Part shown: one piece after another, positions 2,521-40,150 of the stretch
How positions within the stretch are numbered: the first letter of the stretch is position 1
Layout: every line of letters starts with the position of its first letter
The notes under the pieces: model-generated
Told to the model about the DNA's origin: nothing
Database searches by the model: none
What the model saw: only the letters and a program-made list of their open reading frames with translations
Position numbers and translations under genes: made by a program
NCBI GenBank assembly: GCA_904063045.1
Contig: CAJFCJ010000081.1
Location: 1 to 51,143 of the forward strand
From: Dimorphilus gyrociliatus
Taxonomy: Eukaryota > Animalia > Annelida
DNA length: 51,143 nucleotides
Reading direction: 5' to 3'

Positions 2521-2702
2521 AATAATTATACTAGTATATACAGAGCGCCACTCAGCGGCACATCTCTTTCAAGCGGCTTACTACTAATTCGGTTCTATGT
2601 AAATCAGTATTTACCTACAACTCCACACCTCTAGAAAAGTCTTAACAAAGAGCAACTTTTCAATTTGTACGCAATTTTAAAGGAAAAGGAATTGAATTGG
2701 GC

Positions 2703-5930: not shown

Positions 5931-6223
5931 TTTGAGATTATTCATATTTCCAGCCTTTTCTATTATCATTCCGTGCTACTACTGCAATACTTTGCAGTAT
6001 ATATCACTTTACAAAACAAAAGCTAATTATCATACTGGCAACATTCTCAATTGCTTTATATATTTATATTTCTTAATTAGTTTCACTAAAGAATAATTTG
6101 ACATTCAAATCGGATGGAAGATTAACATGATTAAATGAAAAATTGAACAGGATTGTTCATAAATGATTATATTAATTATTTTCAAAAACATTCCTTTAAC
6201 TTTATAAACATTCTAAAGAGGAA

Positions 6224-7303
6224 ATGAAACTTTTCATTCTTTTAAATTTATTTTGCAGTACATTCTCTTCTATTCGAATTAAATATCAAGATATTTTGAC
6301 AGCAATCAATTGAATTATAGTCTACAAACAATTCATTCAGATTCAATAAAATCATACGGAATGTTAAAGGTCTACAGCAAAATTTTGCAGAATGAATATT
6401 TCGTTGTCTATTATCAATTAAATGTTGAAGATAGGAATAATTTTTGCAAAATGATGAATTTTGATGGATTGCATTCTGTAGTAAGACCATGCGATAAAAA
6501 TTCTGGTTAGATATACTGTATTACAGATTTTGCGATGAATTAACTATTATGGTACTTTGTTTTTTGATGATTCAGCAAAATACAATACAAACTCGACGGA
6601 CAACGCTCTTAGTTTTGGAGAAAAAAACAATTGTAAATAAAAAATTATTAAAGGAAGAAAATTTGTTTTCTTTATTTTTTTTCATCTAGTTCCGGTTTGG
6701 AAACTTGCCAAAACTATCATTCTTTTCTTTGTTTAACCTGCTTTAAAAAGGAATCTCAATGTTTGTTGTTACACTGTGACTCTTCAATTCCTTTTTAGTG
6801 ATTTTTATCCAATAAGATCTCATCGCCTTGACAACCTACCATAGCATTTTTCAACTGTACAAGAAATCTACCAACAACACTCTATATAGAGTTATAACAA
6901 AAATAAAAGATATGAAATACTTTTGTGATAAAGGTGAATATTTTATGAGAAGAAGAAAATCTTGTAAGTTTTTTTTTGGCAGTTTGCCAAATTATTGAAA
7001 ATTTAATAAATATTCATCCTTTTTTCTAGTAAGAATCTCTGATAAGGTTGAAATTGGATTGGATTATAATCAATCCAACGCGTTTTACTCTCACGACAAT
7101 ACTAGTGATTATAGAGGAATAAAATGTAGCTTTTTGGATATACGAGGCGTGTAGTTTGCTTGAATAATCAATCAACCAATTATCGTTCATTTACTATACA
7201 GATGTTAAAAGGACTTTGGCTAATGATTTTTATATATCATTCTTTGGTTATAGTCTTGAAAAAAAGTTCTTGAATACAGAGAGGATACTCTTCTACTATG
7301 AGT
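6224..7303 (+). pseudogene. Duplicated 5' part of the lectin-LDLa-LRR-GPCR locus, truncated at the duplication breakpoint
   Basis: Matches 14305-15386 (signal peptide MKLFILLNLFCSTFS) and ends at 7303. Confidence 0.7.
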
Positions 7304-7460
7304 AGCATTCAACTTACCAAGTGCGGAAAGTGTGGACGAACTAACAGTCTATATCGATATTAACGGATTGCAAAAATCTAGAATATTTTATTCAAGCAAT
7401 CCAGCTAATAACTATTCAGGCTACGCTTCCGGTGCAGTAATGATACAATTATCTAAGTAA
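7304..7460 (+). other. Orphan C1q-like coding fragment at the duplication junction
   Basis: Reads AFNLPSAESVDELTVYIDINGLQKSRIFYSSNPANNYSGYASGAVMIQLSK, a C1q beta-strand pattern; absent from copy B; followed by N at 7476. Confidence 0.45.
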
Positions 7461-7475
7461 TTATAATGTAATATT

Positions 7476-7476
7476 N
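7476..7476. other. Single N: scaffold join or ambiguous base
   Basis: atattntaag at 7471-7480. Confidence 0.85.
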
Positions 7477-7843
7477 TAAGTCATTAAATGTAAAATTTCA
7501 ATTGAGAAATATAATTGAAAAGCAGGAAGATAATTTTGAAAAAGATATCTTTTCTTTTGGTGTTTTAATCAAACAAATTTTTTATAGACTATCTTTGTAA
7601 TGAATAAATGATATATATTCATATTTTCTCCAATGTTTGTTTTTGTTAATGATTATAGAATATAATTTGGTGTGTATATCAGCAGTCTCACTAACTTTTA
7701 GCAGAGGTTAGACTAGGCCATAGATCAAGCTTAAAGTGTCAAGGTCAATAACAAGAAAAATCGAAAAACGTTCCATATTATTGCAGTGTCCAGTTTAATA
7801 TTTTATTTGTTTTCTTATATTTTCAGTACCATTTGCAGAGAAA

Positions 7844-9052
7844 ATGTGTGTAATTTCTCTACAAGACATTCTATTAAAATTTATTAGTAATAATCTACGA
7901 TTAATTTGTGATATTTGTCGAAAACATTCGAATATACTTCCAGGTTATATCAGTGAGAAAATTTTAATATACTGCTGTACTAAGATATTTCCATTTTCAA
8001 GAGAAAATCTGGAATTATTTTCACCTAAAATCCTACCTTTATATAATATCTCTCTCAATGGTCACAGAATGGTGGGTGTTGATAATTTGGCTTTTTTGAA
8101 AAATCATCCAATTAATTCGTTATCTTTGGTTAATTTTTATACGCTTTCTTGTCTATATTTTGAAAAGAGTATTGAACAATTAGAAATTAGGCAATCTACT
8201 TTAAAAGAAGAGGCTTGTATTCAGTTAGGGGAAAGTTTAATACACTGCTCAACTTTGAAATCAATTCTAATCGATAATATAAGATATATGAATGAGTCAT
8301 TTAAAAATATATGCAACGGATTAAGCTGTTCACCGTCGTCTTCTTTGATAAGAATAACCATTTCCGGTTGTTATTTAACCGAGGAACAAGGAATATGGCT
8401 TGGTGATTTATTACAAAATTGTATAAATCTACAAGAGATTAACTTGAGTGATAATAAAAGTTTAGGAAAATCATTTCAAAGAATTTGCATTGCTTTAAAA
8501 ACTGTACAAACTGGCCTATTAAAGATTGATTTTTCTTCTTGTAATCTATCGGAAGAGCATGGCTATTGTCTTGGTGATTTATTGATAAATTGTAAAAACT
8601 TGGAAAAAATCGATCTAAGTTCAAATTATAAATTAGAAAATGGATTTAAGAATATTTGTAACGGATTAGAGAATTGTTCTTCTTTACTTGATATTAACTT
8701 TTATAATTGTAATCTCTGTGAAAATCAGATAATTTGGTTAAGTAATTTATTAATTAAATGCAAGATATTACAACATATCGATTTGGGAGGTAATTACAAT
8801 TTAAAAGAAGGATTTCAGATTGTATGCAACTCTTTAAAATCATCTTCTCTATTGAATATTTCCATGTATAATTGCGATTTAACAGAAGATCAAGGATATT
8901 GGTTAGGAGAATTATTAATTGAATGTTCAACCTTACAAGATATTCAATTGCATCATAATGAAAATTTTATTAATGGATTAAAGAGATTAGGAGATAAATT
9001 ACATTCTTTACCTTCATCTTTGTTAAAAATGTTACCTAATGAAGCTGACTAA
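7844..9052 (+). CDS. RNI-like LRR protein with ZYG11/ZER1-like (VHL-box) N-terminus
   Basis: Intact 402-aa ORF. N-terminus SLQDILLKFISNNL...LPGYISEKIL resembles the ZYG11B N-terminus. About 8 repeats of ~28 aa (LxxIxLSxN...FxxICxGL...LLxIxFxxCxL). Confidence 0.85.
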   Translation: MCVISLQDILLKFISNNLRLICDICRKHSNILPGYISEKILIYCCTKIFPFSRENLELFSPKILPLYNISLNGHRMVGVDNLAFLKNHPINSLSLVNFYTLSCLYFEKSIEQLEIRQSTLKEEACIQLGESLIHCSTLKSILIDNIRYMNESFKNICNGLSCSPSSSLIRITISGCYLTEEQGIWLGDLLQNCINLQEINLSDNKSLGKSFQRICIALKTVQTGLLKIDFSSCNLSEEHGYCLGDLLINCKNLEKIDLSSNYKLENGFKNICNGLENCSSLLDINFYNCNLCENQIIWLSNLLIKCKILQHIDLGGNYNLKEGFQIVCNSLKSSSLLNISMYNCDLTEDQGYWLGELLIECSTLQDIQLHHNENFINGLKRLGDKLHSLPSSLLKMLPNEAD

Positions 9053-9284
9053 TCGAAAAGAAATCTATTTATTAGCTTATTAGCAACAAAATGCCTTCTT
9101 ATTATACAGAATGCTTTCTCTCTCTGATATTGTCTTGTCTTATTATTAAATCATCAAATGTTTTTAAAAATTTCTACTAAGTTTAATTAATTTTTTCTAC
9201 ATTAATTTATTAAAAAAATCTATTATTCCTTGTAATAAACAGTCTTTTTTATCTGGCATTTCAAAGTGTTCATTCAATATTCAG

Positions 9285-10599
9285 ATGTCCAATTGATTCT
9301 GAATCATCATCTGAAAACCTATTGATAGTACTTTTTGAAGATCCGAATAATTGTGCTAACTACCACCAATGCATTAATGGAACTTCATATCCGCAAACTT
9401 GTCCACCTGGTCTTCGCTTTAAATTTTCTATTGAAGTATGCAGTTACGTTACCTGCGTTCCTCCAAACATGTTGGGATGTAGGTTGAAATCGTCTGTAGT
9501 TCTTTCGAAAGAGGAATAAGACGAAGAATAAGAAGAGAATAAATGCGGAAATGTGGATAGAGTTAATTCTTTTCGATGCTATGATAATATTGACGAATGT
9601 TCTTATCATTGCTTCAACGGTGTTTCTTGGCCTCAGCGTAGTCCTACTGGCTACTATTTCGCTCCACAAATTAGCGTTTAAGCCTGTAATATTAGGATGT
9701 GTGTTCCATTTATCGAAGCTAATTGTCCAATTCCAGGAGGATGGTCAGAAAGGTCGGAATAGTCGGAATGCGATACTCCATATGGTATTCGATCTAGAAC
9801 CAGACAATGCAATAATCTAACTCTGTCTAATGGCGGTGTAGGCTGTCCAGGTAGTTCAAATGCGAAATAATACCCTGCACAAGTCCAGCGTTTATGGTAT
9901 CATTACCTCGACCAGAAAGTGTTAATAGTGGAAGGATGAATTGGACATCAATAGATATCAATAGAAAACAATTATTTAACGAATTGGATAATAGTCTTCA
10001 TATTAAAACATCAGGAATGTATTACTTTTCAATAACGGGTTCAATGGAAGTTCAAGATTATACCCTGTTAACCCTTGAGAACGTTGGAAGGAGGATAGGC
10101 CTGCAGAAATATCAGAGTAACACCACAATTAATTCAGTAACTAGAGGAGGATTATTCGCATTAAGTAGTTTACATAAACCGAATATAGTTCAAAGATTTC
10201 GAGGTTCAAACTTAATCAGAAGTGAAACTGGAAAAGAAACTTTATGGTTAAGTTTTTACTACGAAAGCGATAGCTGTCTGTTTGTCGCTCGTGATAATCC
10301 AGGGAAGGTGGATATTTTTCATTAATTATGGAATAGGCGTCTACAATACAAACAGAACTAAAGTTTCCTTTTCACAAAATGGTTATATTAGAAAATTGTA
10401 TAGCCGAGAGTACATTTCCCTTCGAAGAGATGTAGGATTACCATACACAGATTCCAGTCTACAAATATATTTAGCAGCTTTTAAATTAAATGAAACTTTA
10501 CCAGTTTTCTCAATTCGTCGAAATATCTTTGCTTGTTCCACATATTTCTCAAGTATAATCTTTAGGGATAAGGTTATCATTGACACATGGTCCAGTTGA
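9285..10599 (+). pseudogene. Chitin-binding (CBM14/peritrophin-A) x2 - TSP1 - tandem C1q-like pseudogene, copy B
   Basis: FEDPNNCANYHQCINGTSYPQTCPPGLRF (CBM14). In a frame not listed in the ORF track, a second CBM14 with TAA at 9679 and a TSP1 motif GGWSERSE*SECDTPYGIRSRTRQCNN...NGGVGCPG (TAG 9760). Then C1q-like SGMYYFSITG...TRGGLFAL, with a frameshift near 10310. Confidence 0.75.
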
Positions 10600-10781
10600 A
10601 ATAATTATACTAGTATATACAGAGCGCCACTCAGCGGCACATCTCTTTCAAGCGGCTTACTACTAATTCGGTTCTATGTAAATCAGTATTTACCTACAAC
10701 TCCACACCTCTAGAAAAGTCTTAACAAAGAGCAACTTTTCAATTTGTACGCAATTTTAAAGGAAAAGGAATTGAATTGGGC

Positions 10782-10870
10782 AATGAGAAAAGAAAACCTG
10801 CTGTTTAATTTCTTAGTGATAAAGTTGCCATTGAATTAAGAAATTAAACAGCAGGTTTTCTTTTCTCATT
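10782..10870. repeat. 34-bp perfect inverted repeat, copy B
   Basis: Same hairpin as 2703-2791. Confidence 0.9.
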
Positions 10871-11738
10871 CAAAGAAAACTATTTTTGAATTACTCTGAA
10901 TTTCTTCACTTAATAAATATTTTTTTTCCAATATCTCCAATAAGACCACTGAACTCATAGTGAAATATGTCAACGTTCTTAGAATAGACATTGAGATAAG
11001 AGCCAAAATATTCCTTAAATTCTCTTTTAACAACTATAATTAATTTAAAATGTTTAGATGTTGTTGCAATGGGAATAAGATCATTTGTTATTTTAATATT
11101 AACAAATTTAAATTTGCATTCTACAAAATCAGTTTAATTGAACTTTTGATTATTGAAAAACTTTAATTAAGCCATCTTTGTATTGAAGATGATGAACAAA
11201 ATTGTGGTAAATGTTTCAAGCTAGAAACTAAACAATTTAACAGTAGTAAAAGTAGTCACAGAATCATCTACCGGAAATGGGTGTGATTCAAATGATTAAC
11301 TATCATTGTACAATGGTTGTTTGTAGTTTGTACTACTTTTTTTATACTTTTGCAATTAATTAGGCCTATAAATTTTTCATTAAGAATACCTCTTTAACAT
11401 TTGCGCTGTTTTTTATCCATCAACCAATTATAAGAATTTGGACAGCTGATTTTCTAAGCAGGTAAGTAATTGAGCTTTGTTAATATTTGTATTGTGAAGA
11501 GGTAAATTTAGGGCTGTTCTGTGCACACCCTTCATCATTTTAAACTTGCCACTCTCCAATTAAACATAAACACAATGCTTTCTACTTTTATCTCTAAACT
11601 TTAATTGCTAATTAGTTTTTGTTTGTCTGAATATTAAACAGTATATAAAGTCATGTTTAGCAAGTATTCATCAAAACTTGCTTCTTGCTTACTTCTCCTC
11701 CTCCTCCTCCTCCTTCTCCTATTCCCTCTGAGATAACC

Positions 11739-12782
11739 ATGAATAATTCTACATTCTTTTATCCAATGTATCCTGTCATTCCGGATACTTTGAATTGGTT
11801 TATAGGTGCAAAAGTCATTTCAACGTTGTGTTTTCTTACCGGTATATTTGGTAATGTTGTAAGTTTTATTATATTTGGAAAGAGTGGTATGAGCGAAACT
11901 ACTACGTCAATCTATCTTCGTTGTTTGGCAATTGCAGATATTGCAGTTCTATTATGTTGGTTTGGTTTAAATATGTTTTTTACAGTTGAACTAAGAGTTC
12001 TTTCCGATCAGCTAATTTTATATTTATCTTGTATGGCTAGGCATACTGTGAGCAAAATGTCTCAGCAGATTAGTTCATTAATACTGTGCGCAATGACGGT
12101 TGACAGAAGTCTGTTCATCCTTTTTCCAACAAAGGCAAAAGCCTTAGCCTCAAAGAAACGAGCGCTGTTTGTAGTTGGAGCAATAACTGTCATGTCAATA
12201 ATAGGCTACTCAATATATTTCCTAATTTATGGCAATCTATTGATTGTTGCTAATCCAAAAAAGAGAGAAACTGGAATATTTGTTTGTCTTGTTCGGGATG
12301 AAAAGTGGGAAACTTATGCCAATGATATTTCTCCAACAATTGATATTATGTTTTTGTACTATATCCCTGGAATTATTCTCCTTATAACAAATATTCTAAT
12401 ATTAAGAGCGTTAATAAATGCTGGTAGAAACAGGAAGAAACTTACAACAACTAGTCAAGATAACAAGGGTCGAAATTCATCAATTATTCTTCTCATTATT
12501 TCAACATATTTCATTCTATGTTCAATACCAAATGCAATATTATTTATATATTTAACAAGATACGTCATAGTTCCAACTCCGAATGACATTGCTTTCTTAA
12601 AAAAGGCTGGTCTTGTAACAGAACTTATAGTTAAATCGAATAGTGGTCTTAATTTCTGTTTTTACTGTATAAGTGGCAATAGATTCAGGAAAGAATTCGT
12701 AGCAATGTTTTGCGGGAGAAAATCCAACAGCAGGAATTCAAATACATCTTCGAAATCCAAAACTATATCTTCCGTCAAGTAA
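11739..12782 (+). CDS. Intronless class A peptide GPCR, copy B
   Basis: Same 347-aa protein as 3659-4702; ATG at 11739. Confidence 0.9.
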   Translation: MNNSTFFYPMYPVIPDTLNWFIGAKVISTLCFLTGIFGNVVSFIIFGKSGMSETTTSIYLRCLAIADIAVLLCWFGLNMFFTVELRVLSDQLILYLSCMARHTVSKMSQQISSLILCAMTVDRSLFILFPTKAKALASKKRALFVVGAITVMSIIGYSIYFLIYGNLLIVANPKKRETGIFVCLVRDEKWETYANDISPTIDIMFLYYIPGIILLITNILILRALINAGRNRKKLTTTSQDNKGRNSSIILLIISTYFILCSIPNAILFIYLTRYVIVPTPNDIAFLKKAGLVTELIVKSNSGLNFCFYCISGNRFRKEFVAMFCGRKSNSRNSNTSSKSKTISSVK

Positions 12783-13269
12783 CACTTTCAGATTTCATCT
12801 ACCACAGATTTTTTGTTCAAAATGACAATTGAATGAAAATTTTAGGTCCATTTATGATTGTTTTTATGACAATTAACTCAAATATTTCCCATCACCCAGC
12901 ACTTGTAAACTTTTATCAATTATTGGTGTTTTTTTTCTTCAGTTAATAAATAAGTCAAAGTATTGAAAATTAACTGTTTTTTTTCTTGAAATGGCCAGAT
13001 CTAGATTTGGCAAATTGAGTAAGAACTTCTATATGCAATAAAATAAAGAATTGCAACAATATGATCCATTAACAACCGTAATTTAGTAATAATCGTTAAT
13101 AAATTTTAGTTGACTATGGTTGCAAGAACACTATAACCAAAAAAGTGTGGCTATATTTAATATACAGTATACTATATAGGTCAGTTGGTTGTTTCACTAA
13201 AATTGAACAGCATTTGCAGATCTTTTGTTATCAAACAGCAAGAGTAACAAGTCTTCAAGAAAGTACTTT

Positions 13270-14010
13270 TTGAATAAGGAATCATTAAAATGTTCCATTT
13301 GTTTTGAACTAAGAATTTGAAAAGACCCTAGAGTGCTACCGTGCCAACATGTGTTTTGTCTACAATGTTTAAATGGTTTAAGAGTTGAGAACTTTCAAAT
13401 TCATTGCCCTGTCTGTAGAGAAGAAGGCAGGCTTCCTAATAGTGGATGTGCAGGTCCAAGAAAATGTTTCATTTCGACTTCTTGCCAAGAAATGTCTCCC
13501 CCCGAAAATACATGCGAAAAGATAAAGAATTTTCAGTATATTGTGAAACACATAATCTTGAAAGTCTATGTTCTAGCTGCTGGGAGGAAAATCACTTGAC
13601 ATGTGAAATTTGGCCTCTTGAAAAGCAAATTAAGAGAAAAGCAAAGCTAAAATCCTACTCACAAGAGGAAGATAGAGATTTTTTTAAAAAACTGAATAAA
13701 GTAAATGGTGAATTTATAGAAAATATTAAGAGAGACTTTCAAAATCGAAAATATATTTATTAAACTAACAAAAGAACAGCAAGAGAAACTTTCGACTATT
13801 TTAGAAAGAGAAAATTTAGACAATGATTTTATTACAACAAATAAATGAACTATCAAAAGAAAAGCCAACATTAGAAATCTTGAATGAAGTAATAATTAAT
13901 TACAAAATAAATACTACTGATTTGAATAAATTTTCAGTATTGATTGACCAATCAGTAGACTTTTCACAATTCTTATTTAAAAGATTAAAGAATTTGTCGA
14001 ATGTTCTATT
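13270..14010 (+). pseudogene. TRIM-like (RING - B-box - coiled coil) pseudogene, copy B
   Basis: TGA at 13318 inside the RING and the same frameshifts as copy A, so these lesions are unlikely to be copy-specific errors. Confidence 0.8.
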
Positions 14011-14304
14011 TTTGAGATTATTCATATTTTCCAGCCTTTTCTATTATCATTCCGTGCTACTACTGCAATACTTTGCAGTATATATCACTTTACAAAACAA
14101 AAGCTAATTATCATACTGGCAACATTCTCAATTGCTTTATATATTTATATTTCTTAATTAGTTTCACTAAAGAATAATTTGACATTCAAATCGGATGGAA
14201 GATTAACATGATTAAATGAAAAATTGAACAGGATTGTTCATAAATGATTATATTAATTATTTTCAAAAACATTCCTTTAACTTTATAAACATTCTAAAGA
14301 GGAA

Positions 14305-17300
14305 ATGAAACTTTTCATTCTTTTAAATTTATTTTGCAGTACATTCTCTTCTATTCGAATTAAATATCAAGATATTTTTGACAGCAATCAATTGAATTAT
14401 AGTCTACAAACAATTCATTCAGATTCAATAAAATCATACGGAATGTTAAAGGTCTACAGCAAAATTTTGCAGAATGAATATTTCGTTGTCTATTATCAAT
14501 TAAATGTTGAAGATAGGAATAATTTTTGCAAAATGATGAATTTTGATGGATTGCATTCTGTAGTAAGACCATGCGATAAAAATTCTGGTTAGATATACTG
14601 TATTACAGATTTTGCGATGAATTAACTATTATGGTACTTTGTTTTTTGATGATTCAGCAAAATACAATACAAACTCGACGGACAACGCTCTTAGTTTTGG
14701 AGAAAAAAAACAATTGTAAATAAAAAATTATTAAAGGAAGAAAATTTGTTTTCTTTATTTTTTTTCATCTAGTTCCGGTTTGGAAACTTGCCAAAACTAT
14801 CATTCTTTTCTTTGTTTAACCTGCTTTAAAAAGGAATCTCAATGTTTGTTGTTACACTGTGACTCTTCAATTCCTTTTTAGTGATTTTTATCCAATAAGA
14901 TCTCATCGCCTTGACAACCTACCATAGCATTTTTCAACTGTACAAGAAATCTACCAACAACACTCTATATAGAGTTATAACAAAAATAAAAGATATGAAA
15001 TACTTTTGTGATAAAGGTGAATATTTTATGAGAAGAAGAAAATCTTGTAAGTTTTTTTTTGGCAGTTTGCCAAATTATTGAAAATTTAATAAATATTCAT
15101 CCTTTTTTCTAGTAAGAATCTCTGATAAGGTTGAAATTGGATTGGATTATAATCAATCCAACGCGTTTTACTCTCACGACAATACTAGTGATTATAGAGG
15201 AATAAAATGTAGCTTTTTGGATATACGAGGCGTGTAGTTTGCTTGAATAATCAATCAACCAATTATCGTTCATTTACTATACAGATGTTAAAAGGACTTT
15301 GGCTAATGATTTTTATATATCATTCTTTGGTTATAGTCTTGAAAAAAAGTTCTTGAATACAGAGAGGGTACTCTTCTACTATGAGTCGAAAACTTATGGA
15401 CCACTTCCCTATTCGTTCAGCTTTTTTGAAAATATGTATAAAGCTTTGAATTCAATCTGTGGAAAATTAAATATGAGATTATATACAAGAATTCCTAATT
15501 ATAAAATCTATCGAACAAAAAACAGATGGCAACAAATGAAAGATGTCAATTTTATATTTTGTCTCTTTTTCTATTTTAAATCATTATCTTTGTTATCATT
15601 TAGGATAAGGAAAAATGCAAATCAACATTTAATCCTGACAGTCTTTCAAAGTATTTTGCAATGTCAAATTGTAAATGGATTGCCGAAAATGAAAGTTATG
15701 ACTGTGAACCAACATGGTCCTATAGGCGGACTATTTCATTCCTTAGTTATTGCGTTAAAAAAGATCCTCTAGTTGACAGTAAATTGATTTTGGTTTTAGC
15801 TAGAGTGGTTTTCCTTAGAAAGTTGACATTCATCTATTTTTCTTTTTCAGATATGAGATATAGACTGTTCAATTTTAAAAATGGTTCAATTTTGAAAAAT
15901 GGTATTTTGAACGGAAAAAATCAATTCAAAGGCGAAAGTTTTGAAGGTGTTTTCCAAATAAATTTTGAAAATTTCTGGTCGAATATCAATCCTTTTCATT
16001 TATATTCAAACGTCATTCAAGCTGCTTGTAAATATTTCGGGTTTGAATATGGAAGGTTAAGCAACTATAATGGGCGAAACTATATTCAATTAGTTCTATT
16101 CACTATAATTTGTGTAGAAACTACAGATTTAGAGAATTGCAAAATAACAAAAGCTCCTCAAAGGGTAAAAAAATCTATTTGTTCTTTAATAAAAACATTC
16201 TTTTTAAGAAAATGATAAATTTCACGTTGACAGTTTAAAGATACTAGAATTTTGACATTCAATGAAAGAAGGCAGTAAATCTATTACTTATATCGTAATT
16301 TAAATGTTACATTTATATTTTATCTTTAGCACAGTGTTCTTTGAATTGTACAATTTACAGTTTTATCCAATTATATCCTGTTTTAGGAGACGTCAATCAA
16401 AGAGTACGTATTAACCATAACCCTAACCCTAACCCTTAAAATCCTAATTAGTTAGTACTCAATCAATGAATATAAAACAGTCTGTAAAAATGAAAAAGGA
16501 CTATTGTACCATGGTTCTTGCTTTTACTTTTACCAATCGAAATATCCCATTTCGGCTAGTGATGCTGTAAGATTATGCAATAGCAGAAATTTAACGATAT
16601 TCGATTTTATAAGATTTCAAGATCTTTTCTACGTGTTCAAGTATCTTACAGCAGTAGCTTTTCTTTCCAATGATTACACTGGCCCACTTACTGATAAAGT
16701 CGGAGGTTTTTCTTTTAAGATACTCTACAAATAGATTAACATAATATCCTCATTTTGCAGCTGTTAAAGAATTCAGCATTCCAACTGGTAAAAATGGCAT
16801 TTAATTTTTTTCTAATTAAAACAAAATAATGTTAATTAGTTTTCAGAATGGCGGAAGATAACAGAGGATATAAACATAGAATATTTCCAAATGGATTATC
16901 CTTCAATTTGAAATTTAGCCGCTTTTTCTAGTAACAGATTATCTTCTTTTAAATCTTCAGTTATCTAAACTTTATGTTTCTATCTCCTTCATCTCCTCTT
17001 CCTTTTCAGTTTTGAGACTAAAGATCAGGTGAAGACAATGAATGTGAAAATAGATGATAAAATTAACTGTTACGAGTTGAAGAATGATCAGTTAGTTTGG
17101 ATTGATATAAAATATCGTGCAGTGCCTTGTTTGCAGGAGAAGTATCAATATTACTTTTGCTACGAACGTGTTGGTGAGTTTAATGCTGTCAACATTAAGT
17201 TATCATCCCATCTAAAAAATAATTCCACTCATTTTGAATATTTCACTCAGGAACGAATTATAAAGATATTATGAATGATTTAATATCTGTTGAAAATTTT

Positions 17301-20094
17301 TCAAATTGTTCATTCAACAGTTTCCTATGTCAAAATTCGAAAAACTGCATTAACGCCATTTATGTTTGCGATGGAATTTTTGATTGTAGAGATGGCGAAG
17401 ACGAAATCAATTGTACAACCAATGATGAGAAACGTCTCTTCTACTGCAATACAACTGTAACTATTCCCTATCAATTTGTTTGTAATTTCATTTCGGATTG
17501 TCCCAACAACATGGATGAAAAATATTGCAGTTGTATCATTTTAAATAATATACTTAACGTAATACTGACTTTTATTTTTCAGCCTACATTTGTCCTAAAT
17601 ACTATAAGTTCGTTAAAAGACAAAATATTAAATTTTTTTAATAGTTACGTAATGTGTTTCTTTTTTATTTAAAAACAACAAAGGCAATGCAAAAACAAAC
17701 AATGCATAAATAAAGATAACTTTTGTGATAATAACCAAGAATGTTTCGACAAATCAGACGAAGAAAACTGTATTGTGAACAATACTTGTTTGTCATCAAA
17801 TTTTCAATCAAATTATAAACAATGCTAATAAACACACAGATTGCAGAGGAAAAACGCAATTTTTATGCGATGGAAAGTGTTCAAGTACAGTATTTCAATG
17901 CGATGCAGATATTAATTGCCTTTCGAAAAGGGATGAATTTGGATGTGGGTTGCGGAAAAAGAAAGAAAGATGTGAATTGACCTATGACAATGACGGACTA
18001 TTGAAAAAAGTCTATTCAACATATTGGAAAATATATTACTGCAATGATAAAATCTGTAATGTAGGTTATTACCAATGTAACATCTATAAATATTGTATAT
18101 CAATTAGTCAAGTTTGCGACGGTATAAGTCACTGTCCTTTCCACGATGACGAATTATATTGCGGTGGGAAGACTTTTATCATTTGTTTCTTTATTCTTTT
18201 CTTCTCTTTCATTCTTTGATTTTAATAGAAAATTTTAATCCAAGTGGTTTTTTCAAATGTAAAAATGAAGAATATTTTATACATCTGAACAAAGTTTGTA
18301 ACAATCATTCAGATTGTAAATACAGTAGTGACGAATTATTTTGTGCCAATCAACATAACTGCCTGAAAAACTGTACTTGTAACATTCCATACGAAATTAA
18401 TTGTCCTTTCGACAAAAGGAACAAAATGACAAAATTGAATTTAGATTCTCTTCTAATCACCAATTTTAAAACTATTGAAATTCATTCAAAGACATTATAC
18501 TACGCGAATATTGCTGTTGTGTCAAATTACGAAATACTTCAATTACGTTTAATTGATATTATTTGGAAAAATTCTTTAAATATTGCTCATATTTTACCAA
18601 ATTTAATCTCTTTAATTATGGAAAATAATGAAATTGTTCATTTAGAGAATATTTTCACTCAAAGTATGGCCATATTGCAGTATTTAAGCTTAAAAAGAAA
18701 TCCTATTAGCAATATTGATCTACTATCCAAAATTCATCTGAATCAACTCTATTCAATTGATCTATCATCTATTAAGGTCAAGGTCATTAAGGATAAGATA
18801 TTTTCTAAAATGAAACGTTTGAGATACGTCTATTTGATAAATTTGAAACTTTTATATATAAAAGAGAAAGCGCTATGGCCATTGAGTAATGTCAAAGAAT
18901 TACATTTGAACGATACCAGTTTTTCATTGAAGAATACAAAAAGGTTGTTTGAAAATCTAACAAATCTTAAAGTTCTGTTTAGTTCATATAGCGATTTGTG
19001 TTGTTATGCAAAAGTCTATTCATATGACCTGACAGTTTGTCTTCCGGTTGAGAATGCTATTAGTACGTGTTTCCATTTAATTGGGTCATATTCATTAAGA
19101 ATTTCCATATGGTTGATTAGTATAATCTCCCTATTGGGTAATATATTGACAATTTGCGCAAGAATTCCATCATCTTTAAACAAAGGAATTAACATAGCCA
19201 GTTTTTTTTTAAATCTATCCGACCTATTTATCAGTATATATTTAATATCAATAGCCGTGGCTGATCAAGTATACAGAGGCAGATATGTACTCAATCATTA
19301 CTATTGGCAAATAGAATTTGGTTGTAAATATTTAGGTTGTTTTTTAAATTTTTCATTGCTAATGTCAATGGGATGTTTACTTTGTATATCAATTGAAAGA
19401 TATATGATAATATCTAATCCTTTTGTGAAGAGGAGCCGCTACATTATCCTAACAGAGTTGATAATTACATTGCTCTTATCATTCATACTAGCAATTCTAC
19501 CTTTTCAACTTTTTGAAGTAAACAATAAATAAATCTATTCAATTTATTCAATTCAATTCAACGAATTTAATGAACCCCATTAAATTTAGGGATATTATTC
19601 AAATACCTCAATTTGTTTTTCTCTATATATTCAAGGTAAAAAATTTAATGGTTGGATATATTCAACAATTCTATTTGGTATATTAACAATGTCAATTTCG
19701 TTAATTATCTCTTTTCTCTATTTTAAAATATTCTCAACCGTTCAACGTTCCGCCAAAGACTGCAAAAGTCAAAATAATAATAATAATCATATTTCTGATA
19801 AATTAGCAGTTAATATCTTCTTAATTGTTATCAGTAATTGTCTTACTTGGCTTCCATTGTCACTGTTAAGTAAGCTCTTTTTTTCAACATAAAAACTATA
19901 TATAGAATTGTATTTTTCATCCAATAGGCATCTATACTACTTTTGGAACAATGCCAATTAATACGGAGCGATATAAATGGCTAATATTAATATTTATTCC
20001 ATTAAATTCAATGCTAAATCCATTTATATATACTCTTGGAGAAATTCGGAATAGGAAGAAAAGTGCTCAGAGAAGAAGAGAGGAAAAAATGTAA
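14305..20094 (+). CDS. GRL101: Multi-exon GRL101-like receptor: signal peptide, C-type-lectin-like modules, 6 LDLa, LRRs, 7TM
   Basis: LDLa repeats 17300-18340 (e.g. CDGIFDCRDGEDEINC) joined by short GT-AG introns. LRRs, DLCC hinge, TM1 LGN, ERY; intron after ~19517; final exon LNSMLNPFIYTL...EEKM* (TAA 20092-20094). CTL motifs GSCFYF/AVRLC at 16500-16580. The part from ~16450 appears intact; exons in 14590-15250 contain apparent stops, so the 5' model is uncertain. Confidence 0.8.
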
Positions 20095-23339: not shown

Positions 23340-24466
23340 TAAGGTATAAAGCAGAGAGTAATTATTCAATTTCTTGTATCACAAGTTATTGCAATCAATA
23401 TTCATAAGCAATCAAAAGTTTTTTTGATAGTACAACACTTAGGAAAGGTTCAGTAAGAAAGTGGGTTAAAGAATTTAAAGGAGGAAGAACAAATATTCTT
23501 GATGAAGACAGACCAGGATGCACAAGAACAGTCAGTATCAATGAAATAAGGACAGAGTTATGGCTCTAATCAGATATAATAGGAGAATAAGCCAGGCTGA
23601 GTTATCTCAAACATTGAATATAGGCCATTCAGTTGTTGAAGGTTTGATTACAAGTCTTGGATTGAAAAAGATTATCTCAAGATAGATTCCCTACCAACTT
23701 AATTGGGAACAGAAAGACATAAGGGTGGAGAGGTCTACAGAATTCCTAGAAAAGTATGGTGAAGGAGAGAATTTTATGTCAAAAATTGTTACAGGAGATG
23801 AAACATGGGTATTCTATCATGAATCATTAACTAAAAGAGTTTCTTTAGAATACCATACAAAACTATCACCACCACCAAAAAAGGTTGAGGCAGGTAAGTC
23901 AGCAGACAAACTAATGGCATGTGTGTTTTGGTATAGGGAAGGGCTTATTCACCTGGAATTTCTAAATTCACATATCAGAATAAATTCAGAAATTTGCATC
24001 AACATTCTAAAGCGATTAAAACAAAGAATAAATAGAATCAGGCCTAATAGAGAAGTGATTTTTTTGCAAGACAATGCCAGATCTCACACCAGCCTACAAA
24101 CAAGCCAATATCTTCAAACAACTGGATGGGTAATGCTGCCTCATCCAGCCTACAGCCCAGATCTTGCTCCATCAGACTATTATCTTTTCTGGAAATTGAA
24201 GGACCATCTTTGCAGACAAATATTTGAAAATGATGATGAATTAAAAACAGCAGTCAGGGCCTTTTTTAGGTCCAAACCGCTCTTATACTTCGCCAAAGGA
24301 ATTGATATGCTTCCCGCCAGGTGGCAAACATGCATTGACAATAATGGGGAATTTGAAGCTAAATAGACATACCTAGGACATTAATTAACATTTATGAATA
24401 AGCATATTTTGTAATTTTTTTTTAGCTGTTAGACACAAACGGCGAGAATTTTCCGGGTGACCCTAA
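23340..24466 (+). mobile_element. Mariner (DD34D) transposon, left end missing, N-terminal HTH frameshifted
   Basis: TGDETW, LQDNARSH-(34 aa)-D, YSPDLAPSDY motifs in ORF 23725-24366; degraded HTH (VRKWVKEFKGGRT) upstream; right end ...ccgggtgaccctaa followed by TA. Confidence 0.93.
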
Positions 24467-25144: not shown

Positions 25145-25709
25145 TATAAATGGAACTGCATTTCTAAGGAAATGTACTGCAGGATAGCTCCTGCTATCAA
25201 CGGAAATTGTGTGTTCATTTATCTTTTTCTAACATTATCCAAAATCAAAGTAACTTAGATCGGTGACATAAATATATAAATATATTGAGGTAGGTTTCAA
25301 CCTTCCAAGGGGACGTTCGCGCCCCCACCCTTTTATTCTTCCTAAGCCACTTTCAAACCAAAATCTAGATTTGAAATTCCCCATTTAAGGATATTTTTTC
25401 TCAACCCTTATTTAAACACTTAATTTTAATCAGAAAAAATTTCTTTGGCGGTGAACTTGAAGTTCTATAACACTGTCACAGAAAATAAACTCAATGATAA
25501 CTTATCATTATCTTTTCTAATACTAGTTTTTGACCTTAATCAAAATTTTTTTTATAATCTAATTGTACAGTTATCAAATACTCGTACTCATTAAATGCAT
25601 GTCATTTCAGGCATATAGGATAAAGAATTATATTTCATGTATGTGTAACTCACTTTTCTGCTCTTGACTTTTTTGTAAAAAATGAAATTAAGACTGAACA
25701 GAACGTTGC

Positions 25710-26089
25710 ATGTTATGTATGAATGTAAGTCAGTGGATGTATGTCAGTATGTGAGCGTCACTTAAGAAGGGAGTTTGACTTAGCCTAAAGCCGGGACAGT
25801 CTAGTCAACTTGATGTCATATCACCAGTTAAATAACGATGTGGCACAATGTGGCACGAACGTGGCAACACGAATGAGCACAATCAAACACTCAGTTAAGT
25901 GACGCTAGCAAGATATAAAAGGAAGTGAATGTAATAGAATGGTGTGAGAGACCAAGAGTACCTTAAATACAATTTTATACGGAATTGTTCGCAATTCCGT
26001 GATACAAGCAATAAACAAAATCTTGTAAAAAGACAATCGGTATTTGTACTTTGTTGTATTGTAATTATAGGAATTTCTGGTTCATCACA
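25710..26089 (+). mobile_element. Probable solo LTR (separate family)
   Basis: GC-richer block with TATA (gatataaaag ~25913), AATAAA (~26010) and a ...catcaca end; no TSD found and left boundary uncertain. Confidence 0.4.
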
Positions 26090-26957
26090 ACTGTAATCGT
26101 CCTTTCCAATCATTTACCAACTTGCCAAAGTACTGGTCCAAATAGAACCTTTAAAGTTTGTCCACAAATAGTCTAACAAATGCAATTTCGGTAGAAATTA
26201 ATCAACAAAACACGAGTATTTCGTCCAAAGAATATGTATTGAGTAAAATGAGCTTCTAGTTCTAAACAAGCTAGTTTAACAACCAGCTGACGGTTAGAGA
26301 ACTGAACTATCAACTGTTAATTTCATAGGGTTTATATACTCTTTTAAAATAGTCATTTTGGTGAATACAAAGTAAAGGCCTAAAATACCCGGACACTGTA
26401 AATTTTGATAGGCTGAAGATTAAAAATTTTTTAAAACACCCCAAAAATGTTATGTTTGTTTTAAATTTGTTTTTTTGTCTAAATTTCCATGGGATTAGGG
26501 ATAGGGCAAAACACAACAAAACGAGACATTTTCTTCCAAATCCCCTTAAAAAGGACTTAGATAATTAGATAAATAGATAATTTAAGTATAAAAAATGCAT
26601 AGAAATTTTAGTGTAAAGTTTAGGGCTGGGTTTGGGGCTTTTTTAGAGTTAGTGTGAAGATCTATCTTGCTATAGATAAGTATTATTAAAGTAGTATTGC
26701 GTGATATTGATTCAGAACTGATATAGATCAACTATTGGCCTACTTTTAAGAAGCGCCATAAGTCCAATAGAATTAAATATGTTACAGACTGTTACAGATA
26801 TTTAACTGAAATGGCTATTCATTGCAGAATGGTATTCCATGTTATTAGATAGAAATTTTTATTATACGGTATATCTCAGTCAAACTAATGCCAAAAAATT
26901 ATACACAATAAATTGTACAAAATGTCTATTCAATAATAGTCTTTTTGTTCTATTCAT

Positions 26958-28247
26958 TTAAAATAAGACTGCATTTGGATTAGCATCTGGCCACGTTTCC
27001 GGCTTGTACTTGTTTCTGAACAATTTCAGAAGGTTTAATGCGCGATTGATTTGCGGATATGTTAATGTGTGATTTATCGCAAATCTAATGGCAGCATTTT
27101 TTTCTGTTGCAGACGGATAAAGGTCAGGTGCGGGAAACATTTGCTCTTTAATAAAGTCGTCATTCATTTCTAAAACTAAATCTAATGATCCAACAATAAA
27201 TGTTGGAATTAGCGTGTTGTCGTCACGGATTAATACGCCGTTGTAGCCTAATTCTATACAAGACTCTTTAAAGTATTTGATTTTATCGAATAGATCATCT
27301 CGTCTCCATTTTTCGGTCTTTACTAATTTTACAGTTTCAATTAATCGTTCGGCAAGACAGTCCTGAGCGGCCAGAGTGAAAATGGACATATTTGATCCTT
27401 TTCGAATGTCATCAATATACTCTCCAGCGACTTTGTTAAGAACTACGGCACCACCACCAGCACCCATAGCCTTTCCAGTTGAGAAAGTTCTAATAGGTAT
27501 ATCATCTTCAAGACCTAATTGTTTTACTAAACCTCCTCCATCTTCGTTATAAATACCGTAAGAATGACTTTCATCAACCAAAAATATACAACCAGTTTCT
27601 TTACAGAGCTGCGCTATTTTTTCAATGGGTGCCATTGTTCCGAAGGCGGAATAGACTGAATCAACTCCAACTAATCCAGGCCCATTAGCCCTAATAAGTT
27701 CTCTCAGGTGGTCGACATCGCAGTGATTGAAATATAGAGAGTTGTATCTACCTATTGCCTTTGCTCCAAGATCCATTGTGGGATGGGAATATTTATCTAA
27801 ATAGATTGGTACTTCCGGTCTATCCTGTAAAATTACTTGAAATGCAACTTGGTTTGCTTCCGTACCAGAGTTGACAAATATAGTTTTATGTCCACCTGCG
27901 TGTTCCGAGATGACTTCTTCCAATTTGGTCACCTTTGAATTGGGATGTCGATTGTAGCAGCTGGAACGATTAAAGCTAATTCTTCCATGTTTAACAATGG
28001 AACTACCATCAATTTGGTTAAGATAGGGATGAGCTGAATAGCTTAAATAATCGCAAGAAGAGAAATCAATATCTCCCTTTAAACTGTCAAAGTATACATC
28101 TCCCAAAGCTTTTTTAATCAACCCTGTGGATTCCAATAAAGCTGGAGAAATGGGTCCAAGTGCTTGAATTTTATCAGCAGTACTTTGATACCTTAGAGAA
28201 AGTGTCAGGTGTCTAACGACTTTGAGAAATCTATAAGACCTTAACAT
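26958..28247 (-). CDS. cqsA: Intronless PLP-dependent alpha-oxoamine synthase most similar to CqsA/LqsA autoinducer synthases, with mitochondrial-type presequence
   Basis: ATG at 28247 (429 aa). Motifs SSCDYL, NSGTEAN, SHPTM, DHLRELIRANGPGLVGVDSVYSAFGTMAPI, GCIFLVDESHSYG, TFSTGKAMG (PLP Lys), PATEKNAAIRF align by eye with V. cholerae CqsA ([43 protein letters not shown]). AATAAA on the minus strand at 26858-26863. Confidence 0.8.
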   Translation of the reverse strand: MLRSYRFLKVVRHLTLSLRYQSTADKIQALGPISPALLESTGLIKKALGDVYFDSLKGDIDFSSCDYLSYSAHPYLNQIDGSSIVKHGRISFNRSSCYNRHPNSKVTKLEEVISEHAGGHKTIFVNSGTEANQVAFQVILQDRPEVPIYLDKYSHPTMDLGAKAIGRYNSLYFNHCDVDHLRELIRANGPGLVGVDSVYSAFGTMAPIEKIAQLCKETGCIFLVDESHSYGIYNEDGGGLVKQLGLEDDIPIRTFSTGKAMGAGGGAVVLNKVAGEYIDDIRKGSNMSIFTLAAQDCLAERLIETVKLVKTEKWRRDDLFDKIKYFKESCIELGYNGVLIRDDNTLIPTFIVGSLDLVLEMNDDFIKEQMFPAPDLYPSATEKNAAIRFAINHTLTYPQINRALNLLKLFRNKYKPETWPDANPNAVLF

Positions 28248-29061
28248 CGTTGTCCGATTAGCGACTGAAACTAGTAGGTCATTAATTGTATATTTATAGA
28301 CTTTCTTTATCCATCTTGAATCAAAATGTGATACTGAAAAGATAATAATAATCTCCTTTTTAAACAAACACCAAACAGAAAAAAGAGGTAAATTTTATAT
28401 CAAATTTCTTTGGCAATGCTTATTTTCCTAAATCTCTTCTTCAAAATCTCAATAACACCAAGACAACTTCGGAAAAAGCATTTCTTTGCCAAAATTTTGA
28501 TTGATTGTTAATAGGTCAAAGTTTCTAATCGCAAGAACTTCTGATAAGAGATTAGCAAATAAAATTTCTAAAACATAAATTACATCGACTAAAGATTAAA
28601 TGTTCTCAAGATTTTTTTTAAAGAACCATCAACAATTTTTAAAATTTTTGTATTAAATTCAATTTGGTAGGTCTTTTTTTGCAAGATCTCAATGCGATCT
28701 GATAGAAAAAATTATTCCTTGACTGTATTATTTGAAGATTAGAAAGTTAGATAAGATATTACAATTCTAGTAGTAATTTGAGCACAACAATGAAAAAACT
28801 AGGCTAGTATCAGCTCTTTGCTGTTTTCTGTTATATAATCTACTTTATTGATTGTTGTTTAAGACAAAGTTTATATGATTGTATACAACTAGACAGCTGC
28901 TTATTTACTAAGTTCAAAGGTATCTTTGATGCTATTCTGTACGTTTTTAGAGAGTGTTATACCTTCAATACTCTACAGTAATCACCTTATCCTACATTTC
29001 GAAATAGAAGAAAATATAAACCCAAACATTCATTCAAGTTACTTTTTAAGATTAACAGTAT

Positions 29062-29555
29062 TGTACACTTATGAACTATAGTTTATAGATATTTTGTAAA
29101 TAATACTTACCATATGGTAGAAGTGTTGAAGTAGATGTTACCTCTGGGGTAGATGGTACTGAACTGCCAGAATCAACCCCTTTTATAGGCAAAGGATAAG
29201 ATATTACATAATCAAATATGTTGACAACAACAAGTGTTTATTTTCATAAATATGATGTAACAATTGACCTTCGAGGGGTAACATACACAAAGTTGTTGTT
29301 GTTGTTTACATCGCTATTGCATAATTTGATAACCCTTGATCCTGTTTTGTTGTGAACAATCCTTATCTGGGGTTAGACCCTTGTTGTTGACAGCTAAGGC
29401 ATAAACAACTGATAAGGAATTGTATAAAAGCAGGGTATAGGTAGTAACAGGCATTCAGTCCTGAATCAACTCCCTTAGTGAACAGGTCTAGTATTACTTT
29501 AGAATACAGTTATATTATTCTTACGTTTTGGTTCTATATTCATCCTCCCTCAATT
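29062..29555 (+). mobile_element. LTR (left copy), last ~5 bp missing at the junction with the next element
   Basis: Direct repeat of 33365-33861; starts TGTACAC; TATA gtataaaag at ~29422. Confidence 0.9.
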
Positions 29556-29757
29556 AAAGGGAAAACGCCCACAGTTTTGTGGTTTTACCCTAACCCTAAC
29601 CCAGCCCTGGACCCTTTTTTAAGCGCTTCATTGTTCCTAACCCTTAGTTTGGACCCACCTAATTACAAATCAATTGTCAGAACATTTTTCCTAACCCTTT
29701 CCCAACCCAAAATCTCACCCCAAAATAACTGCAAAATGAGCGTTTTCAACAGCCCCC
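29556..29757 (+). mobile_element. Short non-autonomous element with (CCCTAA)n core and subterminal inverted repeats (HINE-like)
   Basis: gaaaacgccca...accctaaccctaacccagccct...tgagcgttttc; related copies at ~30185-30390 (reverse) and ~40755-40950. Confidence 0.6.
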
Positions 29758-31190
29758 CAGTACTGGCGGTAAGTCACTGTTACACCTCAAAAAAATAATA
29801 TTTTCTTGATTTTTTCTCTTTCCATAGTTAAAGAATGAAAATGAAGGATATTATTATATTTTAATAATATTCTTATTTATTTATTTATCATTATAGAGAG
29901 AAAATATACATTTTTCATTTCAAATCTCTGAATTATTGATATTTTAATGCAGTAGGCCTATTTTCAGTGGGAGCATAAGTCAAATCACAAAAATTAATCT
30001 AAAAGAATATAAAAAGTATTTTTTTGTTCTTATTTTGACTGTTATTTACAGGATATGAAGTTGTCATATGATTAGACAGTAAAGCTACGTCCCTATCTTC
30101 ATGAACTTAATGTAGCCGAATACCATGATATTCCCTCCCCCAAATTTTACTGTTTTTGTGGTATATTTGGGATCGTTCCATTTGGGGTTGACAGAAAATG
30201 TCCACAAATGAGAAATTTCAAGACAAAAATTTGGATTGGGAAATGGTTAGGCAAAAGAAAACAGCAACTTATTTGTACTTAGGAGGGTCTCCCCTAAGGG
30301 TTAGGGGTAATGGAAAAGGTTAGGTACAGGTAAGGGCTGGGTTAGGGTTAGGGTAAAAGCACTGATTTGTGGACGTTTTCTGTCGCATCCGTTCCATTTA
30401 CCTGGTGGCCTCCTAACAAACTCCTTCCTCCTGGGATGCAGCTCAACCTTTGATTCATCAGAAAAAATTACTTTTTTCCAATTTTCAATACCCCACTTTT
30501 CTCTCTCTCTACAGAACTCTTTCCTACTTATTATCTGCCTCTTGCATAAAACAGGTGTTTTGGCTGCAATCCTTCCATTTAATTATTTTTTCCGAGTACT
30601 TTCTTCACTGTTGTAAGAGACAGAGATATAGGTATGCCAGAGTTATATAAATTTGCCTTTCCATTTTTGGTGTCACTGTTTTTGGTCTACCACTTCTTTG
30701 TTTATCTTTGACAGTTTTTAGGTCTTTAAATTTATTTTTTATGTTTTGTACAGTAGTTGGACTACATTTAAAAAGCTTTACCACTTTTCGAATGGACATT
30801 TCAGGTCTTTGAAGACAATTTAAGATAGAAATTCTTGTTGCTTCAGATAGCTTCACCATTTTTATTTTAAATTTGTCAACTGTTAGATTACACATGCGCA
30901 AACACATAAATGACCTTAAAATCTGGTTAAAAGTGACACTACTCAATGATCAGGGTAAATTTTTTGAACATAACTGATGCTTGTGCTTTTCCATAAATAG
31001 GCCTATCACATTAAAGTGATCATATTTCTGAGATTTTAAATTAAAAACATATATTTTCTTTCTATAATGATAAGAAGAATATTATTAAATATAGTAATAT
31101 CCTTCATTTTCATTCTTTAGGCGTGGAAAGAGAAAAAATCAAGAAAATATTATTTTTTTGAGGTGTAACAGTGACTTACCGCCGGTACTG
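29758..31190 (-). mobile_element. Internally deleted Tc1-like transposon
   Basis: ~115-bp TIRs (cagtac[t/c]ggcggtaagtcactgttacacctc...), TA after the right TIR; ORF 30605-30946 encodes a paired-like HTH (MVKLSEATRISIL...SIRKVVKLFKCSPTTVQNI...RSGRPK). Confidence 0.88.
30185..30390 (-). mobile_element. HINE-like telomeric-motif element nested in the Tc1
   Basis: 20-bp IR gacagaaaatgtccacaaat / atttgtggacgttttctgtc around gggttagggttaggg. Confidence 0.65.
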
Positions 31191-39084: not shown

Positions 39085-40150
39085 TTAAAAATTTCTACTT
39101 TCTTTAGCAAAAAACTCTAAAACATGTCTGTTCTTGTTTGTCATATTCCAATTTTTCATATACGGTCCAGTTATAATTGAACCAAAATCATTTTCATCAT
39201 CAGTTAGACCAAAAAGTTCAACATTTGATGGTTTAATTGTATCAAATTCTGACCAATTAATTTTATGCAATGGATTTTGACTATCTCGCATAAGAATACC
39301 TGGTTTCTTATTACAAAATCCTAGTTTTTCTTTTGATGATTGCCAACGTACATCCATTGACCAGCGAATTTCATTAGATAAATTATTTGTGCTTGTGTGT
39401 GGAAGCATATTGTTAAATAATAAAATACTTCCTTTTCGCATTTCACAAAGAACAACATCCTTTTCCATATCTGCTCCCAAAGTTCTTTCTATCTCAGACT
39501 CTGTTAATACAAGATATGGAGTATCTTTGTAACAGCCTTCGTGACAGGCTACTTTTCCTTTTTACTACTTTCATACATGAATTTGTTTCATTAACATCAA
39601 TAAATGGTATCCAACCAGTTATTTGTAAGACTTTGCAGGCTTCCATGTCAAGATATGCACTGTCTTGATGCCATGGATCATTTGCTTGATTATTTGGTAT
39701 CTTGGTACGAAACAAGTAATTTGGATGACCTTGAATATCAGGACCAAGCAACTGTTCAAGGGCATCAAGTAAACGTTCATTTGACCACAAGTTTCTAAAT
39801 TCTATTGGAAAACCACCAAATTTATAAGCAATGACAGGGGCGTCAGGATATTCTTTTGCCAAATATGTCAAACGTTCATGAGAACCTTTATCTTCATGCT
39901 TATTTGTGATTTTCCCTGCTTTATATAGAATACTTGCACAATTCTCTACAATACAATCCATAGCCTTTAAACAAGGATTAATATCATTTTCAATATCGAA
40001 AAAATCCTCTATCACCAAATAACCTTCCCTAAAAAAGAAATCAACTTGTTCTTTTGACAATGGACCTTGTTCTTTTGCATCTTTTGGTGGTACAGTAAAT
40101 ATTTCAGGATGACATTCTCCAGAAAAGCCATTTGATCTTGAATCACTCAT
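39085..40150 (-). pseudogene. Intronless phytanoyl-CoA dioxygenase (PhyH) family 2OG-Fe(II) oxygenase with one frameshift
   Basis: FFREGYLVIEDF, PWHQDSAY (HxD), GWIPFIDV, LPHTSTNNLSNEIRWSMDVRWQ (distal His, Arg). The frame switches near 39560 (VVK/GKVACHEGC...LG ADMEKDVV). Confidence 0.8.

Follow-up and report, generated by a model that had tools for sequence, protein, structure and literature searches.

How does an enzyme come to be carried, transcribed and addressed as an animal gene product when its closest characterised relatives produce quorum-sensing signals in bacteria? The question is raised by an intronless gene of the annelid Dimorphilus gyrociliatus, located on scaffold CAJFCJ010000081.1 of assembly GCA_904063045.1, a stretch of 51,143 nucleotides (nt) that was analysed at its full length and is referred to here as the window. 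The encoded protein, P0001, is read from the minus strand in a single open reading frame (ORF), from an ATG at 28247..28245 to a TAA stop at 26960..26958.

26958..28247, minus strand: coding sequence (CDS) of P0001, a CqsA-like alpha-oxoamine synthase dependent on pyridoxal 5'-phosphate (PLP); intronless ORF of 429 amino acids (aa), PF00155

Taken jointly, the observations are best explained, with moderate confidence, by a gene whose transcription would start at an initiator placed behind a TATA box, whose messenger RNA (mRNA) would carry an unspliced leader of about 19 nt and end after an AATAAA hexamer, and whose protein product would begin with a mitochondrial presequence.

The enzyme and its N-terminal leader

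In its modelled fold and its cofactor residues, P0001 has the features of an alpha-oxoamine synthase of PLP fold type I. It matches Pfam PF00155 at 3.5e-22, its ORF is intact, and the PLP lysine K259 as well as the cofactor-binding residues H155, D225 and H228 are invariant or nearly so. The AlphaFold model, with a predicted local distance difference test (pLDDT) of 92, matches the folds of CqsA, ALAS and KBL, structures of ALAS and KBL are found by sequence as well, and the best match in the PDB, by sequence and by fold, is CqsA of Vibrio cholerae (1e-33; Foldseek template modelling score 0.77–0.87). The top NCBIfam match is NF005526 (alpha-hydroxyketone autoinducer synthase) with 196.5 bits, far under the equivalog cutoff of 428, which places P0001 outside the CqsA/LqsA equivalog. 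With CqsA of V. cholerae and LqsA of Legionella, the protein has in common the PLP-binding residues and the first helix described below, whereas identity is about 25%, the animal proteins form a separate clade, and they carry some 23 extra N-terminal residues and are devoid of the WGG loop.

Two close relatives of P0001 were used throughout. P0002, encoded at locus L001 on scaffold 22 of the same assembly, is 57% identical to P0001, and the two are paralogs in one annelid genome. P0003, encoded at locus L002 in another species, is 50% identical to P0001 and is the ortholog of P0002, both having the same convergent SSF-transporter gene as a neighbour; this transporter is gone beside the window copy. 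The tree groups them as (P0003,(P0001,P0002)), with the longest branch leading to P0001 (0.61 vs 0.2–0.3). P0002 and P0003 are intronless like P0001; all animal copies examined consist of a single coding exon. A clade of 14 animal members (starred; Owenia and Lingula included) is sister to the bacterial CqsA group and not nested within it. Capture of the gene by a transposon was considered and rejected, as no direct or inverted repeats flank it. In a search of the literature on animal CqsA-like genes, no paper describing this gene was found.

The question of where the enzyme would work is raised by its first residues, and the following features are needed to address it.

28176..28247, minus strand: presequence-like leader, codons 1–24, MLRSYRFLKVVRHLTLSLRYQSTA; 5 K/R, no D/E; conserved in P0002 and P0003
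28193..28182, minus strand: putative mitochondrial processing peptidase (MPP) site around R19-Y20-Q21-S22, loose R-2/R-3 fit

The ATG at 28247 must be transcribed, because the next in-frame Met is residue 158, within the catalytic domain, and because the first 25 codons are conserved as protein through several synonymous changes. A first-pass annotation of this DNA had described the N-terminus as free of acidic residues up to D25, and this is confirmed: P0001 begins with MLRSYRFLKVVRHLTLSLRYQSTAD, which contains five K/R and one H, and D25 is the first acidic residue. The leader counts, besides its basic residues, 5 S/T and 6 L/A. Its pattern, MLRS..L..R[YF]QSTA[DE], recurs in both the paralog and the ortholog, and residues 1–25 are 40–64% identical among the three proteins, against only 18–32%, with an indel, in the linker that follows. 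In the AlphaFold model, pLDDT is 55–59 over residues 1–30 and 92 or more from residue 51, the fold begins at a helix spanning residues 35–48, and helices at 2–11 and 14–29 are drawn in the leader with low confidence. The first helix in common with the bacterial enzymes (PxFLxxRVxxYY) aligns to residues 34–50, SPALLESTGLIKKALGD, and the leader lies N-terminal of it.

Leaders were compared between 11 full-length animal proteins and 74 bacterial relatives. The number of residues before the first shared helix has a median of 34 in the animal proteins and of 11 in the bacterial ones, where it is variable and reaches 48; the median position of the first acidic residue is 25 against 6.5. No D or E occurs in the first 19 residues of 9 of the 11 animal proteins, compared with 7 of the 74 bacterial relatives. 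The earlier statement that such an extension is missing from bacterial CqsA is therefore only partly right: it is too sweeping as regards the bacteria, and holds as regards the greater length of the animal leaders. At its N-terminal end, the NCBIfam CqsA/LqsA profile falls short of P0001 by just about 3 residues. The leaders of P0010, P0013, P0015, P0016 (from Owenia) and P0017 are unrelated in sequence, basic, and acid-free for 24–41 residues. Composition kept without sequence kept is typical of targeting peptides.

Because the leader is conserved, because basic acid-free leaders recur in the animal clade, and because the segment lies outside the predicted fold, a mitochondrial presequence is the best reading of the comparative data, and a fairly probable one. 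Under this proposal the first 20–24 residues, basic, hydroxylated and acid-free, would most likely act as a cleavable matrix-targeting presequence; cleavage would take place near R19, at -2/-3 of the conserved R-[YF]-Q-S-T-A site, and import into mitochondria would concern a protein whose catalytic fold begins at about residue 34. If imported, P0001 would arrive where the cell makes its acyl-CoA thioesters. ALAS and GCAT, two further animal enzymes of this fold, also work in mitochondria, and their leaders are cleaved on import. P0001 resembles ALAS1/2 and GCAT (KBL) in its PLP fold and in having a basic acid-free leader ahead of an acyl-CoA-using catalytic domain. It differs from them in that the leader sequences are unrelated, in that its subfamily is sister to bacterial CqsA/LqsA, and in that its import and cleavage are predicted from sequence; the heme-regulatory CP motifs of ALAS are absent from its leader.

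Several observations weigh against a presequence. Calculated at 100 degrees per residue, the hydrophobic moment is no higher than in shuffled sequences (z = 0.56, -0.1 and -0.05 for P0001, P0002 and P0003); a periodicity of 120 degrees does exceed the shuffles (z = 2.9). An acid-free run of 24 residues has a probability of about 0.05 under a simple composition model, and three longer acid-free runs exist elsewhere in P0001. Acid-free starts are also seen in the seven bacterial relatives counted above, and the leaders of P0004 and of Lingula P0018 are less typical. The strict R-3 motif R-x-[FYL]-[SA] (MPP/Icp55) is not matched in the leader. For the cleavage site of R-2/R-3 type that had been proposed earlier, only loose forms fit: R19-Y20-Q21-S22 agrees with loose R-2 (xRx|xS) and R-3 and is conserved in the three proteins; a match to R-10 (Oct1) is found in P0001 alone and is not conserved.

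These points can be read in favour of a leader that is not mitochondrial, namely one in which residues 1 to 24, or up to 33, either form a helix, specific to this lineage, with a structural or regulatory role in an enzyme of the cytosol, or attach the protein to membranes and stay uncleaved. Such a leader is possible, if somewhat unlikely. It would agree with the lack of alpha-helical amphipathicity and of the strict motif, with the length variation that bacterial relatives display as well, and with the conservation of residues 1–25, which equals that of the catalytic core and is above what is usual for presequences. It agrees poorly with the recurrence of the same composition in unrelated animal leaders and its rarity in bacteria, with the low pLDDT of a segment outside the fold, and with the finding that conservation is highest at a site centred on Arg and continued by S-T-A, the pattern expected near a processing site; nor is there a hydrophobic anchor. 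The mitochondrial retargeting proposed in the first pass remains the likelier reading, with support from the conserved leader, its clade-wide composition and its position outside the fold. Two other destinations were examined and rejected: a signal peptide, as the leader has no hydrophobic core, and peroxisomal targeting, as no peroxisomal targeting signal of type 2 (PTS2) and no C-terminal one of type 1 (PTS1) was found by eye, the C-terminus ending in -LF.

Expression, start site and end of the mRNA

Two sequencing runs, in the form of assembled contigs, were compared with positions 25500–29400 of the window; such contigs cannot show transcript ends. For run X2 the library type is not on record, and its RNA nature was deduced from the depth profile. 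In this run, a contig of 1265 nt (record 11) is identical to 26868–28131, without differences, at a depth of 343, and a contig of 140 nt reaches 28208 at a depth of 156; together the gene contigs cover 26868–28208. In the flanks, depth is about 5 or none, and it is about 5 over the upstream DNA at 28358–29088. The profile appears to be that of a transcript, with the gene body expressed. In addition, two contigs with 99% identity to the gene are present in X1, an independent metatranscriptome from coral. It counts against the joint explanation that the contigs stop at 28208, 39 nt inside the CDS, and cover neither the ATG nor the start and poly(A) sites.

The chain of contigs stops at 28208 because a fold-back contig is found there, made of 28102–28208, three unmatched letters and the reverse complement of 28102–28131. 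This contig is probably an artefact of cDNA strand switching or of assembly, close to where the transcript has its 5' end. The stretches to either side of the gene, 26024–26416 and 29037–29400, have depths of 800–7500 in X2 with many diverged contigs, and are abundant repeat families, possibly transcribed.

Upstream of the ATG, the following features were recorded.

28298..28291, minus strand: TATA box TATAAATA, first T 32 nt upstream of the initiator A
28263..28268, minus strand: initiator-like TCAGTC, A+1 = 28266; overlaps the acceptor-like ctagtttcag (28274..28265)
28248..28266, minus strand: predicted 5' untranslated region (UTR) of 19 nt, from the distance between initiator A and ATG, with an inferred start; 18 nt in L001 and L002
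28328..28355, minus strand: upstream block GATTA..ATC..CTTTCAC/G, a possible regulatory site, from alignment; also at L001 5906–5930 and L002 1254–1279
28265..28334, minus strand: formally possible GT..AG interval of 70 nt with a weak donor GTATCA, not supported as an intron

The fly-type initiator (Inr) consensus is TCA+1KTY, YYA+1NWYY being the alternative form, and in metazoan core promoters the TATA box lies about 30 nt upstream of the Inr A+1. Both elements are found upstream of the P0001 gene at the expected spacing, TCAGTC being a perfect initiator and the first T of the TATA box lying at -32, and they define a start that is predicted rather than mapped. Transcription would most likely begin at TCA(+1)GTC, with the A at 28266, 32 nt behind the TATA box. 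The layout is kept in the paralog and the ortholog: in an alignment of the 130 nt upstream, TATAAA stands at -51, -49 and -49 and TTTCA at -23, -22 and -22 from the ATG in the window, L001 and L002, respectively. Differences from the canonical arrangement are the partial initiators of L001 (TTCAATC) and L002 (TTCATAA) and the shortness of the 18–19-nt 5'UTR. Over the two strands of the window taken together (102 kb), the combination of TATAAA and, at this distance behind it, TCAKTY turns up only 6 times.

When the upstream 130 nt were aligned locally and compared with dinucleotide shuffles, z was 3.8 for the window and L002, 2.2 for the window and L001, and 9.7 for L001 and L002, the window copy having the more diverged promoter. 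In the next 130 nt upstream, the window is similar to neither relative, and L001 and L002 still match each other (z = 4.1). The block GATTA..ATC..CTTTCAC/G, which lies about 40–55 nt upstream of the TATA box and is common to both paralogs and the ortholog, may be a transcription-factor site. An argument against the start at 28266 is that the implied 5'UTR of 19 nt is unusually short for a species reported with rather long UTRs (PMC7854359).

The same few nucleotides had been read differently in the first-pass annotation, which noted ctagtttcag 17 nt before the ATG, with an A at -3, and saw in it the acceptor of a possible 5'UTR intron. The motif is indeed present, at 28274..28265, with exactly 17 nt between it and the ATG and an A at -3. 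Its reading as an acceptor is not supported, as the AG is not conserved and the motif coincides with the initiator behind the conserved TATA box; tttcag is taken as the start site and not as a splice acceptor, because the placement of TATA box and initiator gives an unspliced leader of about 19 nt. For an intron, tttcag at 28270–28265 would have to be a real 3' splice site, with a short non-coding first exon further upstream. This is unlikely. The 70-nt interval from GT (28334) to AG (28265) comes near the median intron of the species, 66 bp (PMC7854359), a YTRAY-like TTAAT lies upstream of the AG, and contig coverage is missing at 28209–28357, where the junction would fall. These points are outweighed by the sites themselves. 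The aligned acceptor position reads CAA in L001 and CAT in L002, and L002 has neither an AG in the last 45 nt nor a GT between -130 and -40; the donor GTATCA is without the usual +4A, +5G and +6T, the pyrimidine tract ctactagtttcag is broken by purines, and the interval would enclose the positionally conserved TATA box. Moreover, 8.8% of the ATGs in the window have a YYYYAG-type motif 5–40 nt in front of them, and the upstream DNA at 28358–29088 is covered only at the background level of about 5, compared with 343 over the gene. No splice joint near the gene was seen in the X2 contigs, which cover 26868–28208 and leave 28209–28357 uncovered.

On the preferred reading, an unspliced leader starting at the initiator, the gene should be annotated with just one exon and a very short 5' leader. 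Two distant homologs, P0010 and P0015, have a strong pyrimidine tract and a CAG 4–7 nt upstream of the ATG (L006 2985–3000 and L007 2975–3000), which lends the intron some support by analogy; a 5'UTR intron may, judging from these sites, occur elsewhere in the family, in other lineages. Spliced-leader trans-splicing at tttcag was also considered and rejected, as D. gyrociliatus has been reported to lack trans-splicing (PMC7854359).

At the other end of the gene, two features follow the stop codon.

26868..26957, minus strand: 3'UTR within the transcript-like contig (X2 record 11)
26858..26863, minus strand: AATAAA, candidate poly(A) signal, starting at the 95th nt after the stop

The hexamer at 26863..26858 had been placed about 95 nt after the stop in the first pass, correctly, and had been called a poly(A) signal. 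In support of that role, the 200 nt downstream of the stop contain no other AATAAA and no ATTAAA, and the paralog (+24, L001) and the ortholog (+46, L002) likewise have an AATAAA close behind their stop codons. Against it stands the chance rate, as AATAAA occurs in 17–18% of 120-nt windows here. The 3' flanks of the three genes are not conserved (z no greater than 0.4), and the transcript-like contig, which reaches 26868, 5 nt short of the hexamer, shows no tail. Use of AATAAA as the poly(A) signal is plausible, these observations being modestly consistent with it, and the mRNA would probably end shortly after 26863–26858.

Origin of the gene and its surroundings

The possibility that the sequence stems from contaminating bacteria or is a recently inserted and dead gene, and that its eukaryote-like signals arose by chance in AT-rich DNA, was weighed against the surroundings of the gene and its homologs. 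On the 51-kb contig the gene is embedded among rhodopsin-type G-protein-coupled receptor (GPCR) genes, an LDLa-LRR receptor with seven transmembrane segments (7TM), an ORF with a PhyH domain, and transposons including a mariner transposase. The GC content at third codon positions (GC3) is 0.30 in the P0001 gene and 0.22–0.29 in the neighbouring ORFs. Intronless homologs occur in chromosome-scale annelid and brachiopod contigs; in Owenia fusiformis, the homolog (L005 3001–4302) is intronless and nested, on the opposite strand, inside a gene for a 1516-aa UCH-domain protein on a contig of 34.9 Mb. Contamination has practically no chance of being correct: each signal is singly common by chance in DNA of 30% GC, and the closest characterised relatives are bacterial CAI-1 synthases, but the animal neighbours, the host-like GC3, the intact ORF with its cofactor residues, the high representation in transcript-like contigs, the sister position of the animal clade and the Owenia copy all speak against it. 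Because of the animal neighbours, the host-like GC3, the eukaryotic core promoter, the expression and the intronless homologs in chromosome-scale contigs, contamination is excluded, and the gene is an expressed single-exon nuclear gene of D. gyrociliatus. The first-pass annotation had reached the same conclusion from the eukaryotic signals that it listed; the conclusion was right, and the evidence that carries it is of another kind.

Genes of bacterial origin become useful to animals only after they have gained a host promoter, mRNA signals and, where needed, an organelle address. The present gene, with a conserved TATA/initiator promoter and a mitochondrial-type leader, displays the end state of such an acquisition unusually cleanly. 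Events in which a gene of bacterial ancestry acquires a host promoter together with an organelle leader are of a known kind, and the present gene would add a new case. Should the leader function as proposed, the enzyme would act at the site of acyl-CoA production, which narrows the search for its product and makes it directly testable whether autoinducer-like ketones are produced by these worms. A wider scenario, which is speculative and on present evidence unlikely, would be that spiralians (annelids, brachiopods and others) keep an ancient mitochondrial CqsA-like enzyme derived from bacteria, which would join an amino acid and an acyl-CoA from beta-oxidation into an alpha-amino- or alpha-hydroxy-ketone, an animal product in the chemical class of the bacterial quorum signals CAI-1 and LAI-1; Dimorphilus would have duplicated the gene, promoter and leader included, with the window copy evolving faster toward a new specificity.

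Several observations concern the remainder of the window. The ORF at 18159–19532 combines LDLa, LRR and rhodopsin-family 7TM domains, arranged as in an LGR or relaxin-type receptor, and the PhyH-domain (phytanoyl-CoA dioxygenase-like) ORF lies at 39494–40150; both are likely to be exons of larger animal genes. The mariner-type transposase ORF is at 23725–24366. Positions 1–16300 are made of a tandem duplication of about 8.08 kb, in which six sampled blocks of 300 nt are 100% identical at a spacing of 8073–8083, and by which a rhodopsin-type GPCR ORF is doubled (3599–4702 and 11685–12782); either the duplication is of very recent date or it is an artefact of assembly. Finally, nested inverted repeats are found at 29561–31190, with outer arms of 104 nt that are 94% complementary (29758–29861 and 31087–31190) and inner arms of 48 nt with short CCCTAA telomere-like repeats (29561–29608 and 30333–30380). 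They enclose an ORF of 113 aa (30605–30946), and the whole looks like the remnant of a DNA transposon.

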